Origin: Ranitomeya imitator | Lineage: Eukaryota | Length of the DNA stretch: 64,000 nt | Assembly (NCBI RefSeq): GCF_032444005.1 | Contig: NC_091286.1 | Location: forward strand, 68,200,001 to 68,264,000 | Direction of reading: 5' to 3' | Shown here: piece after piece, positions 49,737-62,500 of the stretch | Layout: every line of letters starts with the position of its first letter | Numbering within the stretch: position 1 is the stretch's first letter | The notes under the pieces: model-generated | The model's input: the letters and a program-made list of their open reading frames with translations, nothing else | Told to the model about the DNA's origin: nothing | The model's database searches: none | Made by a program: the position numbers and the translations under genes

Positions 49737-51140
49737 CTATATTGAGTTCCCCTTTATATGAACTGCCGACAGGGATTGTAAGTGATTCTCGGCCAGAGAC
49801 AATATCTGTGCTGTAGTGGTCATTAGGGATCGTGACCTTGTCCCCCCTGATGATTGATGTAGGCTACCACAGTCATATTGTCTGTTTGTATCTGTACATG
49901 GGAATTCCTCAGGGATGGTAGTAAGCAAAGAAGAGCCTGATTGACTGCAGCAAGCTCTCTTAGATTTGAGGAATTTTGGGACTCTTGAATCGACCATCGC
50001 CCTTGGGTTAGAATGTCTCCCATATGGGCTCCCCAACCGAACGGACTGGCATCTGTTGTAACTACATTGTCCGGAGTGATGGTCCAGAGAACTCCTTTTG
50101 ACAAATGTGCTAGATTGAGCCACCATCTCAGATCGTGAAGAGTGGCGGGTGATAATTTGAACTTCCTGCTTAGAGCACCGTGAAGATCTTTCTCTGCTTG
50201 AAGAACTTCGTATTGAAGCATTCGGGTATGAGCCTGAGCCCATCTCACCGCCGATATACACGCAGTCAAAGATCCCAGTAGAGACATTGCGTCTCTTAAA
50301 CTTAAGTTTGGAATTTCTCTTACGGCCGTGATCCTTTGAATGATCTTCTGCTTCTTCTCTTCTGGTAGGAAGAACTCCTAGGAACATTTGACGTCTTGTG
50401 GGTTCCAGTGTTGACTTTTCCCAGTTGATAATCCATCCGAGTTCCTGTAGGGATGATATTATGGCATTTACCCTAGACGTACACTGAGCAATTGAATTTC
50501 CAACTATCAAAAAATCGTCTAGATAGGGCACTACAAGGGTTTCCTTTTCCCTGATATGGGCCATTACTTCCAAAACAACCTTCGTAAAAACTCTAGGTGC
50601 CATGGACAGGCCAAAGGGCATTGCCAAAAATTGAAAATGTTTAATCTTATGGTTTACCCATACTGCCATCCTGAGGAATTGCTGGTGATTTCTGTGAACT
50701 GGAAGATGGTAGTACGCATTTTTTAGATCCAAGACCGACATGTAGCACCTAGGAATCAAAAGCTTAGTTGCTGATTTAATGGATTCCATCTTAAAAGCGT
50801 GGTACTGAAGATATTTATTTAATTTACGTAAATTTATGATAGTCCTAAAGGACCCATCAGGTTTAGAGATTAAGAATAGCGGAGAATAAAAACCCGTCTT
50901 CTCCTGATGTTTTGGTACTTCTTCAATAACTCGCTTTGTAAGCAATTGTTGAATCTCTAATTCTAAGGCCTGTTGTTGGGCCGGAGTGTCCAGTGATGTT
51001 ATTACAAAATGATTTGGGGGAGTTCTCAAAAATTCTAGTTTTAACCCTGACTCGACTACCCCCATTATCCAGGCACTAGAAGTTATCTTTCTCCATTCTT
51101 CTGAGAAGAACCTTAGTCTTTCCCCTACTGGTAGATCTGT
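49737..51140 (-). pseudogene. DIRS reverse transcriptase and RNase H, with a deletion/frameshift between them
   Basis: FYSPLFLISKPDGSFRTIINL, LDLKNAYYH, MPFGLSMAPRVFTK and PYLDDFL; RNase H TTDASPFGWG...RELAAV...TDNMTVVAYINHQGG. Confidence 0.94.
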
Positions 51141-51141
51141 T

Positions 51142-52586
51142 CTATCTGTAATTACGTCTACGTCTTGAGAAAGATGAAGGGTTCTTATAGTATCCACCTT
51201 TCTTCTTTTGATCCGACGTTTCCCAGTCACGATTATATCCCTGTTGGTCTGACTGGAATTTTCTGAAGGGCATGCATCTCCGGAAGGCATTCCTAAAAGT
51301 GGGATTAAATGTTTTAGGAAATCCCTTCTTTCTGTCTTCTGCCTTTGCAAGGATGTCATCCAGCACCAGGCCGAATAGGTACTCACCCTTACACGGAATG
51401 GAGCACAATTTGGCTTTAGCCTGAGCATCCCCCTTCCAGGTCTTTAGCCATAGTGCCCGTCTGGCTGCATTCGAAAGACATTCCGATCTTGCGGCCAATT
51501 TCAGGGAATCAATCGAGGCATCCGCTAGATAAGCTGCTCCTTCTCTGACCTGAGACAGGGAATTCAACAATTTATCCCTGGGTACCTTTGCTTTGAGCTG
51601 TTCCTCCAGCTGAGTCACCCAGACCATGATTGATCTAGCCGTACAGGTGCCTGCGGTAGCGGGTTTAAAGGCTCCAGATGACGACTCCCATAGTTTTTTA
51701 AGGAGCATGTCAGCCTTCCTGTCTGAAGGATCCTTGAGGAGCCCTACATCTTCTAACAGTAATGAGGCTGTCTTTGAAGTAGAGGCTACTGCCCCATCCA
51801 CTTTCGGAACCTTCATCCACTGGGATAAGGTGTCATCCTCAAAGGGGTACCTTCTTTTTGCAGCTGAAGGTAAAAACCCCTTATCCAGCTTGTCCCACTC
51901 CCATCTGACCAGATCCTTAACTGAATCCACCACTGGGAAAGCTTTCCGACTTCTCTGGCTCAGCCCTGCGAACATGATCTCCTGGGTTGTTTTCGGTTCT
52001 TTACTCTCTGCAACCCCCATAGTCGCACGGACTGCTCTGATTAAGGTCTCCATACTATCCGTGGAAAAGCAAGGCCTTCCCTCCTCATCTGAAGAGGATG
52101 CCGAAGAACTTTCCGAGCATTCGCCCTCTTGTAGCGAAGGGCTGGAATCGGACACTAACTCCACACTGCTTTTTTTATGCCGTCTGGATTTAAGGGATGA
52201 TTTTATTTCTTCCCTAATTACTTCCCTCAAATCCGATACCCGGAGAGGGGCCTCTTCTTCTAACGTACGGCATATACATGTTTGACATAATTTCTTTACA
52301 TAGGTGTCAGGTAGAGGCTCTGTGCATAAAGCACACTGCTTATGCTTAGATTTGGAGACCTTCTTCCCCTACAACAAAGCATAGTATAGAAAAACAGTTG
52401 TATCAGGCAATGGTTCACATATCAAACTCACCACTGCTGACAAATATAGAGTACCGGTTTCTGAGGGGGTGAGGTGCGACGTGACGTCGGGTTGCCAGGG
52501 TCCTGCTGCCCGCGTACCACATCCCCACTAAGAGACCTGCTGATGTGCTCTCCTTGTCTGTGTTCGGCGTCTCCTGCCGAAGACAT
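51142..52586 (-). CDS. DIRS ORF1 (gag-like): predicted two exons, 52455-52586 and 51142-52368, with a C-x2-C-x12-C-x2-C finger
   Basis: The frame is open from 52368 to the stop at 51142 (GKKVSKSKHKQCALC...CQTC...KVDGAVA...LLKDPSDRKAD...AARRALWLKTW). The exon join is inferred. Confidence 0.7.
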
Positions 52587-54396
52587 GTTGCCGCACACAC
52601 ACTCACCTGAGCGCTGCTTCCTTTCAAAAGTCCCGCGCTCCTCCCGGTCTCCTCCGGAAGCCGTTACCTTTACTTCCGGGTCATAAGCGCCGACCTGCTC
52701 CAGCAGCATCGCGCGCGTGTGGACGACCCAGGGCGGCGTGCCTTCCCCCGGGAACGCAACTAATCCTCGCCAGACGAGGGGGGAGGCTGAAAACAAGACT
52801 TCCCCCGACGCTGCTTCCGGGCCCCTGACTCTGCCGTTCCCCCCCCGGACACCGCACAGAGGCTTGGCAGACCCGGGTAAGACAGAAAGACTCCTGCAGG
52901 CTCCCGCCGTCCGGACAGGAACCCAAACTGGAGGGCGAGGGGGGCCGCCCCTTTTTAACCTGTAGGTTCCTGTCCGGAAGGTGGGCGGATCCCCTCTCTC
53001 GTTGTGGGTGCTGTCGTGGCGATAGGAAAAATGAAACTTTATTATCATACCACTGAACAAAATGTGGAATAACACGCGATCATAAAGACTAATATAAATA
53101 ACCAGAGTACCGCTGAAAATGTCATCTTGTCCCGCAAAAAAGAGCCACCATACAGTGTCATCAGCAAAAAAATAAGTTATAGTCCTCAGAATAAAGTGAT
53201 GCAAAAATTATTATTTTTTATGTAAAATAGTTTTTATCATATAAAAGCGCCAAAACATAAAAAAGTTATAAATGAGCCATCACTGTAATCGTTCTGACCT
53301 GAAGACTAAAACTGCTTTATCAATTTTACTAAACGTGGGACGGTATAAGCGCCCCTCCCAAAAGTAATTCGTGAATAGCTGGTTTTTGTTCATTCTTCCT
53401 CACAAAAATCGGAATAAAAAGCGATCAAAAAATGTTACGTGTCTGAAAATGGTACCAATAAAAACCAACTCGTCCCGCAAAAAAACAAGACCTCACATGA
53501 CTGTGGACCAAAATATGGAAAAATTATACCTCTCAAAATGTGGAGACGCAAAAACTATTTTTTGCAATAAAAAGCGTCTTTTAGCGTGTGACGGCTGCCA
53601 ATCATAAAAATCCACTAAAAAAACCCCGCTATCAATAGTAAATCAAACCCCCCTTCATCACCCCCTTATTTATTGAAAATAATAAAAAAAATTATTTCCA
53701 TTTTTCCGTTAGGGTTTGGATTACATTTACAGTTGGGATAAGGGTTGGGATTAGGGTTAGGGGTGTGGTTAGTATTATGGTTGAGATTAGGGTTAGGGGT
53801 GTTTGGGTAAGAGTTTCAGTTATAATTGGGGGGTTTCCACTGTTTAGGCACATCAGGGTCTCTCCAAACGCAACATGGCGTCCGATCTCAATTCCAGCCA
53901 ATTCTGCGCTGAAAAAGTAAAACAGTGCTCTCTCCCTTCCCAGCTCTCCCGTGCACCCAAACAGGGGTTTACCCAAACATATGGGGTATCAGCGTACTCA
54001 GGACAAATTGGACAACAACTTTTGGAGTCCAATTTCTCCTGTTACCCTTGGGAAAATACAAAACCGGGGGCTAAAAAATAATTTTTGTGGAAAAAAAAAA
54101 TATATAGAATATTTATTTTCACGGCTCTGCATTATAAACAGTAGTGAAACACTTGGAGGTTTAAAGTTTTCACAACACATCTAGATAAGTTCCTTAGGGG
54201 TCTTCTTTCCAAAATGGTGTCACTTGTGGGAGGTTTCAATGTTTAGGCACATCAGGGGCTCTCCAAAAGAGACATGGCGTCTTAACTCAATTACAGTCAA
54301 TTCTGCATTGAAAAGTCAAATGGCGGTATCAGCATACTCAGAACAAATTGTACAATAACTTTTGGGGTCCAATTTCTCCTGTTAACCTTGGTAAAT

Positions 54397-54708
54397 TAAA
54401 TGGTAAATCGCTGCGGAATATGTTTGCGCTATATAAAGATAAAGATGATTATTATTGATGATTATTGATGATGTGATCCTCAACCTACTGAACAGCCGCA
54501 CAGCCAGCTTTTCCCTCTCCTAGTGTATCCTCACCCACCCCCTGCAGACTGTGAGCCCTCGCGGGCAGGGTCCTCCCTCCTTATGTACTCGTGTGCCTTG
54601 TTATCTGCTCATGTTTAATGTATTTGTCTATATTGGCCCCGTATTCACATGTAAAGCGCCATGGAATAAATGGCGCTATAAAAATGTATAATAATAATTA
54701 TTATTATT
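54397..54708 (+). mobile_element. Two tandem L2 3'-end fragments
   Basis: Two 3' hairpins (~54408-54435 and ~54655-54680), each followed by a simple-repeat tail. Confidence 0.8.
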
Positions 54709-59500: not shown

Positions 59501-62500
59501 GAGGAGGCCGATTCCATCTGGGGATCCCAAAGGCCTTGCAGGATATGATCTTTGAGGTGCGCCCCCCAGCCTAATGGACTCGCACCCGTTGATAGAACCA
59601 GGGGATTGTGTATTGACCATGAAACCTCTTTTTTTAAGTTTTTGGTTTCTAACCACCAATTTAGAGAGTCCCGTACCTGTGGTGCTAATGTGATTTTTCG
59701 GTTCAAGTTGTAAGGGTTTTTTACTTGTTCTGACAATATCTGCCACTGTAACTCTCTGGAATGTAGTTATGCCCATTGGACAGCCGGGATCGATGCTGTC
59801 AGCATACCCAGTAGAGACATGGCTGGCCTCCCTCACCGAGATGGATCGGGTACTCTGTGCTGGTCTTATCCTTTGTTTTATAGCCTCGACCTTCCTGTCC
59901 AGAAGGACACAGACTTGTTTGGTTGAGTTTATCTGACTCCCCAGGAACTCTTGTATCTGGGTTGGAATCATTTTTGACTTTTTAAAATTTATTATCCATC
60001 CTAGCCTGGACAGTATCTCCAGTACTTTCACTACTGTCTCCATGCAGTCCTCCTGGGTGTCTGCTATAAGGAGAAAATCGTCTAAGTAGGGTACTAGAAG
60101 AATATTTTCTTTCCTTATGTAGGATGTTATCTCTGAAATTATTTTTGTGAAGATACGAGGGGCTATTGACACCCCAAACGGGAGGCATTGATATTGTAGA
60201 TGGGTGTACACCTGATCCAGCAGTACCACCATCCTCAGAGACTGTTGATGTTCTATGCAGATTGGTACATGGTAGTATGCATCCGTAAGATCTATCACTG
60301 CCTTGTAACAACCCAGATACAGTAATTTTATTGCTGATTTTAGTGTTTCCATTTTGAATTTTTCTACCCGGATGTATTGGTTTAGGGCTTTTAAATTGAA
60401 ATTTTTCTTAGTGACCCATCCGGTTTTGGCGTGAGTAATAGGGTGCTGTAAAACCCCTTCCCTATATCCTGTGGTGGTATCCTTACAAGGACTTTTTCCA
60501 GAAGCAGGAGGATTTCCCTTTCTAGCAACTTTTGGTTTTAGTGCTACGTGGGTGACTTTTCCGATGAGGAGGCTGGGTAACAAAGTTCAAACGTAGGCCT
60601 TTGGATAACAGGTCGATTACATTGTGAGGACTGTAAGGTCTCCCATTGATGGACGAAAAACCAAAGCCTTCCTCCCACCCGGACTCTGGCGTTATTGTTG
60701 TTTAGGGTCTGGTTTATGAGGGGGCTTATTGAAGAGGAAGCCTCTGTCTCTTCTATCATTCCAAGCCCTCCCCCGAGTGGATCTATCTGCTGGCCGGACT
60801 CGGCCTGCTTTACCTGACCCCCAAAAGGATCGACGCACGTCACCCCAACAGCGTCTGAACAAGGGGGCGGAGGAAATGCTTCTTATCTGCAGTCTTCTCC
60901 AAAATGTCATCTAGCGCTTTCCCAAATAGGTACGGTCTTTCACAAGGTACAGCACAAAGTTTTACCTTTGATTTGAAGTCAGCATTCCAATTCTTTAGCT
61001 ATAGTCTTCTTCTACCTGAATTGGAAAGCATGCATGCCCGAGCAGAAAAACGTACCGAGTCAATGGCAGTGTCTGCTAGGAACCCCGCCGCATTTTGTAA
61101 TGACGGTATTACTTCCATGAGTCTATCCCTTGGGAATTTGTCTCTTATTTGTTCCCCTAGTTCTTCTAACCATTTTACCACGGCCCGAGCTGTGCAGGTG
61201 GCGGCTACTGCTTCTTTGAACAACAAGGTCGACGCCTCCCAAGCAGATTTTAAAAAGGCATCCGCCTTTCTGTCAAGGGGGACCTTCAAGGCGCCCATGT
61301 CCCCTAAGGGAAGAGCAATACCTCTGGAGGTACTCGCAATGGCTGCATCAAGCTTAGGCGCTTTCTCCCATTTGTCATATCTCCTCATCAAAGGGATATT
61401 TACGTTTTAATGCCTGGGGGACTGCCATTTTCTTACTCTGCTTTTTCCATTCCTTTTTAATCAGATTTAGGACATTATCATGAAACGGAAATACCCTCTG
61501 TTTCCTTCCCTCCAAATTGTTAAACATTGAATCATGGATTGATTGCTGTTCTTTTGGGGTTTCAACTCCTAGGGTAGAACGAACAAGTTTCAACAATTTC
61601 CCAATATCTTCAGATAACACATACGGGTGACCAAACTCTTCTTCTGTAGAGTTTAAGTCAGTCACCCCCAGGCAGTAATTCCACTGGTTCCCCCTTAGAT
61701 TCTATGTCAGTTCTGTGTAGGGGCAGAAGATGTATTTTCGGAACTATGCAATTCATGTTGTTTAAAATGCTCTTTTACTGTGCTCTGGACCTCATCTCTA
61801 ACAATTGCTTTAATGTTCTGGAGTCACCGTTTTCTCTATACACGGACGACAGATCAGTTTTTCATATGCTCTAGGGAGGGCTTTCTCACAGAGTGCACAT
61901 ACTTTATTCTTTTGTTTGGACGTCACTTTCTTTCTTTGTATACGTGAAATATAGTGTTACAGATTCGTTTTTGCCTTAAAAAGGCAGTCACCCCAGGAAA
62001 CCTTAATACCACGGCAGGCTGTGGGTTCTCTGCTGGAATGGCAGATTCCACCGGGTCCGCCATTCTGCAGGAGGCTGTAGCTGGCGTCAGGATTGCCGCT
62101 CCCTCCTTAAATGATTTTAGAGCGGTGTATGCGTCCCTGAAGCTGCTCCCCTCTGGGAGTGTCAGCACACCGCTGTCACTCGGCGTGTGACATCACTTCC
62201 GGTTTGATACAGGAAGTTTCCCCATTCACTCAGCGCCTGGCGTCGTGATGGGCACGCCCCCTTACCCCAGCTCAGCCTCCGGCCAGGAGCGAATGCCGGG
62301 GAGCCCGCAGCAGGCAGGATGCTTCTCCGCAGCTCCAGGGCCCGTAAGTGGCGAGCGCGCGCCGACACCCGCCACGCGCCTTGGTCTCCGGACCAGAATC
62401 TGCCAGAGAGAGATCCCTCCGTATGCAGCACCTCAGGCTCCCCGCCAGAACAGGAAACCAAACTGAGGAGAGTGGTGCCGCCCCCATCTTTTATCTCCTC

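Follow-up and report, generated by a model that had tools for sequence, protein, structure and literature searches.

Retroelements normally lose introns, being copied from processed RNA. The locus described here raises the question of whether a DIRS retrotransposon has nevertheless kept a spliceosomal intron at the start of its gag gene, and what such an intron would do. Amphibian genomes are rich in DIRS elements, about which little is understood. Only two DIRS copies are present within “the window”, i.e. the whole 64,000-nt stretch of Ranitomeya imitator DNA that was analysed, and the original prediction had placed an intron in both of them, immediately upstream of the zinc finger. For the first copy, we estimate a probability of about 70% that the 86 nt at 52454..52369 (minus strand) are a genuine, positionally conserved phase-0 U2-type GT-AG intron, which would gate the translation of Gag.

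Structure of the first DIRS copy

The first copy (copy 1) occupies positions 47921..53019 on the minus strand and was recognized by inverted terminal repeats (ITRs), an internal complementary region, and Pfam domains. The ITR arms (47962-48063 and 52918-53019) have a length of 102 nt and are 99% complementary. Complementarity to 47921-47976 (96%, with one ITR end compared) marks the stretch 48210-48265 as the internal complementary region. The ITR at 53019 is devoid of its outer ~41 nt, and the loose ends of related contigs continue as the complement of 47921-47961. Stretches of N are present in neither copy 1 nor copy 2.

The gag gene matches the Pfam domain LAP2alpha (PF11560) with a value of 1.5e-21, and its LAP2alpha-like part matches the solved C-terminal domain of LAP2alpha (PDB 2v0x, chain 2v0x_A) with 1.9e-19. 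The reverse transcriptase (RT) reading frame comprises 563 codons (49737..51428, minus strand) and matches Pfam RVT_1 with 6.7e-20; the respective value for copy 2 is 6.8e-17. The match to Phage_integrase is weak (E 0.0028, under the curated cut-off) and consists of a 117-aa fragment at 48312-48665, where the frame is fragmented. In comparison with related contigs from several sequencing runs, the RT region of copy 1 is missing 26 nt at 50368 and 1 nt at 49841, and its alignment to the closest relative (P0001, see below) changes frame near 50370. The extra letters of the related contigs at 50368 and 49841 indicate that pol of copy 1 is broken, although the ITRs are still 99% alike.

In each of the four runs described below, the flank beside the DIRS end (53020-53100) exceeds the element in word depth ~100- to 1000-fold. 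This flank is probably a very high-copy repeat that was the target of the DIRS insertion. On the other side, copy 1 adjoins direct repeats of ~400 nt (44001-44413 and 47226-47643; families D3, D6, D7, and D8), which are 79-96% identical and 3.2 kb apart, and may be the LTRs of another element or a segmental duplication. A further unit of ~340-400 nt occurs in two tandem copies with 83-89% identity at 53829-54398 (families D2 and D5).

Proposed exon-intron layout of gag

The proposed gag exon 1 (52455..52586, minus strand) was defined by its translation and by the alignment to P0001, and consists of an ATG and 43 further codons rich in S, R, and P. It is followed by the proposed phase-0 intron of 86 nt (52369..52454, minus strand), which was delimited by the sequence, the reading frames, and a break in the homology to P0001, and which has the boundaries CCG/GTACTC and TTGTTGTAG/GGG. 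Exon 2 (51145..52368, minus strand) contains 408 codons, which encode a K-rich start, a CxxC-x12-CxxC finger (52335..52276, minus strand), and the LAP2alpha-like domain, and its frame is closed by a stop codon at 51144-51142. In the upstream direction, the exon 2 frame first meets a stop at 52371-52369, a TAG that is the acceptor itself. Between this TAG and the finger of copy 1 there is no ATG, and the first in-frame Met is codon 106.

Without splicing, the frame that starts with the ATG at 52586 encounters a TGA (52430-52428) inside the insert after 52 codons. Removal of the 86 nt, a length of 3n+2, joins 44 and 408 codons in frame. The AT content of the insert is 64%, compared to 39% in exon 1. 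As read from the sequence, initiation at the first gag ATG of the unspliced RNA could yield no more than a peptide of 52 residues, and not a Gag protein that bears the finger. The original prediction had given the ATG at 52586, the GTACTC start, the length of 86 nt (3n+2), and the in-frame connection to ORF1, all of which proved correct on re-reading, and it had rightly described the inserts of both copies as AT-rich (64% in each case).

The frame of the ATG at 52586 belongs to an open stretch of 258 codons, which offers three GT donors and six AG acceptors as in-phase choices, each with an open product. Because in-frame GT/AG pairs are so frequent in this stretch, frame compatibility alone is weak evidence for an intron.

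Comparison with the closest relative

The translation of exon 2 was searched against protein databases, and 50 relatives were retrieved. Most of them are NCBI gene models from Ranitomeya variabilis, R. imitator, Dendrobates tinctorius, Phyllobates terribilis, and Bufo. The best relative, with 77% identity, is P0001 (XP_077137263.1) from R. variabilis, which is, like the other NCBI relatives, a computed gene model.

Two blocks of P0001 align to copy 1. Residues 1-56 align to 52598..52455 and end exactly at the proposed donor (48% identity), while residues 57-383 align from 52368 to 51385 (76.5% identity). Zero residues of P0001 are left between the two blocks, and the 86 extra bases of the window start with GT (52454-52453) and end with AG (52370-52369) on the minus strand. 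The P0001 model thus joins its two parts exactly at the GT and AG that had been predicted for copy 1. Exon 1 is weakly conserved, with 48% identity to P0001 and no similarity to copy 2. On its own, the first block has an E-value of 1.8e-9 (4.9e-5 with composition correction), and its frame is kept across two whole-codon gaps, which argues that exon 1 is coding despite its low identity.

The P0001 model also points to a putative second intron, which would comprise 94 nt at 51293..51386 (minus strand) in copy 1, with the boundaries AGG/GTGAGT and TTTTAG/G. Its removal would fuse gag to the RT frame. The junction CRG/IPSRD of P0001 matches the CKG/MPSGD of the window exactly across these sites. 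The strong donor lies within the conserved G-E-Y codons of gag; it is absent from the homologous codons of copy 2.

The second copy

In copy 2, which is also oriented on the minus strand, a putative gag exon 1 of 18 codons (62010..62063, from the sequence) begins with an ATG at 62063. It is followed by a putative intron of 80 nt (61930..62009; 64% AT), which has weak sites (GTG/GTATTA and AGAAAG/AAA). Exon 2 (60740..61929) was identified by the alignment to P0001, the homology beginning at 61929, and it contains the finger at 61840-61899, 10 codons downstream of the acceptor. Decay of the gag frame of copy 2 is evident from 18 stops in 400 codons, together with at least one frame shift. The pyrimidine tract of the acceptor is poor (48% Y), and besides the proposed pair, three further GT/AG combinations would be in frame.

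To compare the two copies, alignment scores were contrasted with those of shuffled sequences. The starts of exon 2 (the first 80-86 nt) are significantly alike, as none of 500 shuffles reached the score. The interiors of the inserts are not significantly alike (38 of 500 shuffles), and the first exons have no similarity (64 of 500 shuffles). The coordinates that had been predicted for copy 2 (ATG 62063 and an 80-nt insert at 61930-62009) were found to be accurate, and so was the warning that its acceptor is weak. The further claim that both copies have an intron at the same site before the finger held in part: it gains comparative support, but the solution for copy 2 is plausible by its position and is not unique.

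The same boundary in other frog gag families

A survey of 96 proteins was performed for pairs with finger regions that are 88-100% identical and upstream parts that are unrelated. In four further frog gag families, the two members of such a pair part at residue -11/-10 relative to the first Cys, where the conserved A/G-K-K/R start follows. The four families are represented by P0004/P0018, by P0007/P0015, by P0006 and P0008/P0076, and by P0013/P0036/P0045/P0047. As judged from these proteins, the acceptor position is common to several gag families. All four Cys of the finger are conserved across frog gag families with identities of 31-77%, and the K-rich stretch before the finger is also conserved in families down to 31% identity. 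We regard it as likely that an intron site 11 codons before the zinc knuckle is common to many DIRS families of dendrobatid frogs. The exact coincidence of the GT..AG pair with the homology break to P0001, together with the occurrence of the junction in other gag families, makes the pair more than a chance match. Word searches with residues 1-140 of P0022 and with the exon 2 finger region retrieved only the query itself or P0001.

Five of the models from R. variabilis and R. imitator (P0015, P0018, P0036, P0045, and P0047) are chimeric, i.e. exons of host genes are joined to gag exactly at the gag acceptor. The host parts belong to an SH3-domain protein, a tRNA methyltransferase, a protein disulfide-isomerase, and an Sm protein. 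The chimeric models suggest that DIRS insertions serve as exon traps, either in fact or in the gene predictions.

Several reading frames read through the boundary (the Logan P0022 cluster, P0055, P0076, and P0017), and in these a peptide rich in F, L, S, and P, followed by a Q, directly precedes the junction. This is the look that would be expected of a translated pyrimidine tract followed by CAG. In the Logan proteins P0022 and P0051-P0064, which are derived from contigs of ~5.0-5.3 kb, the putative intron has a length of 32 codons and is in frame and stop-free. Most differences between the members of the P0022 cluster upstream of the finger are located in this 32-codon insert. In the P0022 family, the unspliced RNA would also encode Gag, albeit with the insert. 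In the distant P0043 (31% identical), the reading frame runs uninterrupted over 22 residues from a start codon to the finger, so that gag forms that apparently have no intron may exist as well.

Contigs from public sequencing runs

Eleven public runs were found, none of which is on record as RNA, and the share of the sampled words present in each is 8-14%. Three studies supplied the four runs (X1, X2, X3, and X6) whose contigs were aligned to 48300-53100 at 88% likeness. Related copies are represented by contigs along the entire element, and the insert is crossed without a break, e.g. at 52216-52485. As the related contigs of all four runs contain the 86-nt insert, it is a feature of the family, and the possibility that it is an insertion private to copy 1 was rejected.

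The joint 52455/52368 was not present in the contigs of the four runs, which contained the unspliced form only; these libraries are possibly DNA, and contigs drop rare forms. Likewise, no GT..AG joint was found anywhere in the element (48300-53100) in the same contigs. The few joints that were listed have ends other than GT/AG; with their short sides, they resemble diverged copies that matched in part. Single-nucleotide indels are not listed for the related contigs inside exon 1. They do occur upstream of the ATG at 52586, namely an insertion of one nucleotide at 52601 and the deletion of base 52666. An alternative start at the ATG 52709 was rejected, because relatives have 1-nt indels between 52709 and 52586.

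Splice-site quality and alternative donors

Besides the GT, the donor of copy 1 (CCG/GTACTC) matches the MAG/GTRAGT consensus only at -3, the G at -1, and the A at +3. It has neither the A at +4, nor the G at +5, nor the T at +6, and thus deviates from the donor consensus of U2-type introns. Weak donors occur elsewhere, and a poor donor lowers the claim of an intron without excluding one. At the other end, 70% of the final 27 nt of the insert are pyrimidines. The A of a branch-like site, CTGAT, is at 52403, which leaves 34 nt to the 3′-end and 51 nt to the donor.

A strong GTGAGT is located within the insert (52426..52431, minus strand) and is a putative decoy 5′ splice site. Its use as the actual donor was rejected, as it is out of frame with exon 2 and would leave an intron of 63 nt, with 28 nt to the branch-like A. 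Both reservations about copy 1 that accompanied the original prediction, i.e. that the proposed donor is weak and that the stronger GTGAGT at 52431 leads to an out-of-frame product, are borne out by the sites present and by the frame. In addition, the leader contains a consensus donor (CAG/GTGAGT; 52601..52609, minus strand), 20 nt before the ATG of gag. Its position resembles that of the major splice donor of retroviruses.

The presence of much better donors upstream of a weak one raises the possibility that the acceptor at 52369 is real but that the donor and the first exon are different. Candidates are the leader donor CAG/GTGAGT at 52606, the donor AAG/GTAACG at 52667 together with the ATG at 52709, or alternative first exons. 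In that case, the 86 nt would represent no more than the 3′-portion of an intron that is longer or defined in another way. The comparison across families is compatible with this possibility, since it pins the acceptor and not the donor. However, a junction between the leader donor at 52606 and the acceptor at 52369 would lose the ATG and would not keep the frame. The in-frame donor at 52667 loses the T of its GT by the deletion of base 52666 in the related contigs, and this deletion and the insertion at 52601 show that the region upstream of 52586 behaves as non-coding sequence. Furthermore, the first exon of P0001 stops exactly at the proposed donor. We thus consider a different donor improbable, although it is the best of the alternatives.

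Possible synthesis of Gag without splicing

A somewhat less probable alternative is that splicing does not occur at all, and that Gag is made from the unspliced RNA by internal or non-AUG initiation, e.g. at Met 106 (52053). The finger and the upstream ATG exon would then be relics or remain untranslated. This would be in line with the exclusively unspliced form in the contigs and with several related gag models that begin at a downstream Met and have no finger (e.g. P0011, P0019, P0023, P0037, and P0039). In contrast, the conservation of the finger Cys and of the K-rich stretch down to 31% identity needs translation of this region, and the sequence from the TAG to the finger contains neither an ATG nor a good near-cognate codon. 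The models without a finger look like truncated predictions.

Least probable is a chance match combined with an annotation artefact, i.e. a fortuitous GT..AG pair and predictors that stitch open frames together: in-frame GT/AG pairs are frequent in the stretch and the gene models are computational, but two independent alignment blocks are bounded exactly by GT and AG (for the dinucleotides alone, odds of ~1 in 256), four other families and the host chimeras have the same boundary, and the start of exon 2 is conserved between the two copies while the interior of the insert is not.

A model for two fates of the DIRS RNA

If the 86 nt are an intron, splicing would join the 44 and 408 codons to an open reading frame for a Gag protein of 452 residues, which would be translated from the spliced RNA. 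Reverse transcription would use the unspliced RNA as its template. This would be the only route by which an intron can be inherited, and would account for its presence in every new copy. It would follow logically that the RNA has two fates, with the spliced form being translated and the unspliced form being copied. The weak donor, the short length of the intron, and a strong but unusable GTGAGT 23 nt past the donor would be expected to make splicing incomplete, so that both RNA pools could coexist. More speculatively, the GTGAGT at 52431 might be a decoy that restrains splicing, comparable to the pseudo-5′ splice sites of some retroviruses. The second intron of 94 nt near the end of gag would, based on the P0001 model, give rise to a Gag-Pol fusion.

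These elements can be combined to a splice-coded programme of frog DIRS elements, which we offer tentatively and regard as rather doubtful as a whole. In such a programme, an obligatory 5′ intron would gate Gag and mark the genomic RNA, the second intron in the G-E-Y/F codons would make Gag-Pol and replace a frameshift, weak and decoy sites would set the ratio of the two pools, and inserted copies would offer a 3′ splice site before an open gag exon.

Comparison with other retroelements

Retroviruses also divide their RNA, by means of suboptimal splice sites, into a spliced pool for translation and an unspliced pool for packaging and reverse transcription. The negative regulator of splicing of Rous sarcoma virus is a pseudo-5′ splice site. 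Purely by analogy, a strong but unproductive 5′ site such as the GTGAGT at 52431 could favour unspliced genomic RNA. The transcript of LTR elements, namely the Ty1/copia elements of Arabidopsis and Drosophila and BARE of barley, is likewise split into spliced and unspliced pools (PMC5580714, PMC3735527). The spliced pool of these LTR elements is translated, the unspliced one is packaged and reverse transcribed, and the splice sites are suboptimal (PMC5580714, PMC3735527), an arrangement that frog DIRS elements would share. A difference is that Gag or Gag-Pol is already encoded by the unspliced RNA of LTR elements and retroviruses, from which splicing takes out pol or gag-pol. The unspliced RNA of the frog DIRS element would be unable to make Gag, as a small intron would interrupt the start of gag. 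Moreover, the frog element is a tyrosine-recombinase (DIRS) retrotransposon and not an LTR element.

Penelope-like elements are reported by Arkhipova and colleagues (2003) to retain spliceosomal introns. They would thus have in common with the frog DIRS element that a spliceosomal intron is kept through RNA-mediated copying, but they belong to another order of retroelements and have another mode of replication. We know of no description of a gating of gag translation in Penelope-like elements.

The founding DIRS element, DIRS-1 of Dictyostelium, is replicated from full-length RNA, and the introns that are mentioned for it are engineered markers (PMC7192593). Like the frog element, it has ITRs, an internal complementary region, a gag-like ORF1, and RT, and it has a tyrosine recombinase, to which the weak Phage_integrase match of the frog element may correspond. 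No natural gag intron is described for DIRS-1 (PMC7192593). The terms “intron” and “splic” are absent from four papers that are dedicated to DIRS elements (PMC2685390, PMC3266345, PMC3783388, PMC9210276). A description of a natural gag intron in DIRS elements was not found in the literature, with Goodwin and Poulter (2001) as a possible earlier mention. The survey of DIRS elements in Xenopus relied on ORF finding with ATG as the only start (PMC9210276), an approach that would miss the true N-terminus of Gag.

The LAP2alpha domain of mammalian TMPO and of ZNF451 was domesticated from a DIRS gag (PMC4495291). The mammalian LAP2alpha domain is encoded by one large 3′ exon that is spliced to host exons. 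Exon 2 of the frog gag matches this domain, which in mammals is part of host genes.

Implications for DIRS biology

A conserved intron at the start of gag would mean that the element must separate two RNA fates and that the host spliceosome controls the production of Gag. The intron would thus provide a testable handle on the balance of translation and replication in DIRS elements. With an acceptor of their own in front of gag, DIRS insertions would also be natural exon traps, a point of relevance to the chimeric frog models and to the origin of host exons of the LAP2alpha type. Should the tentative splice-coded programme be true, the ready-made acceptor would explain why many chimeric models of host genes and gag are joined at that residue, and it could also be the reason why a DIRS gag was repeatedly captured as a terminal exon in mammals (LAP2alpha of TMPO, ZNF451).
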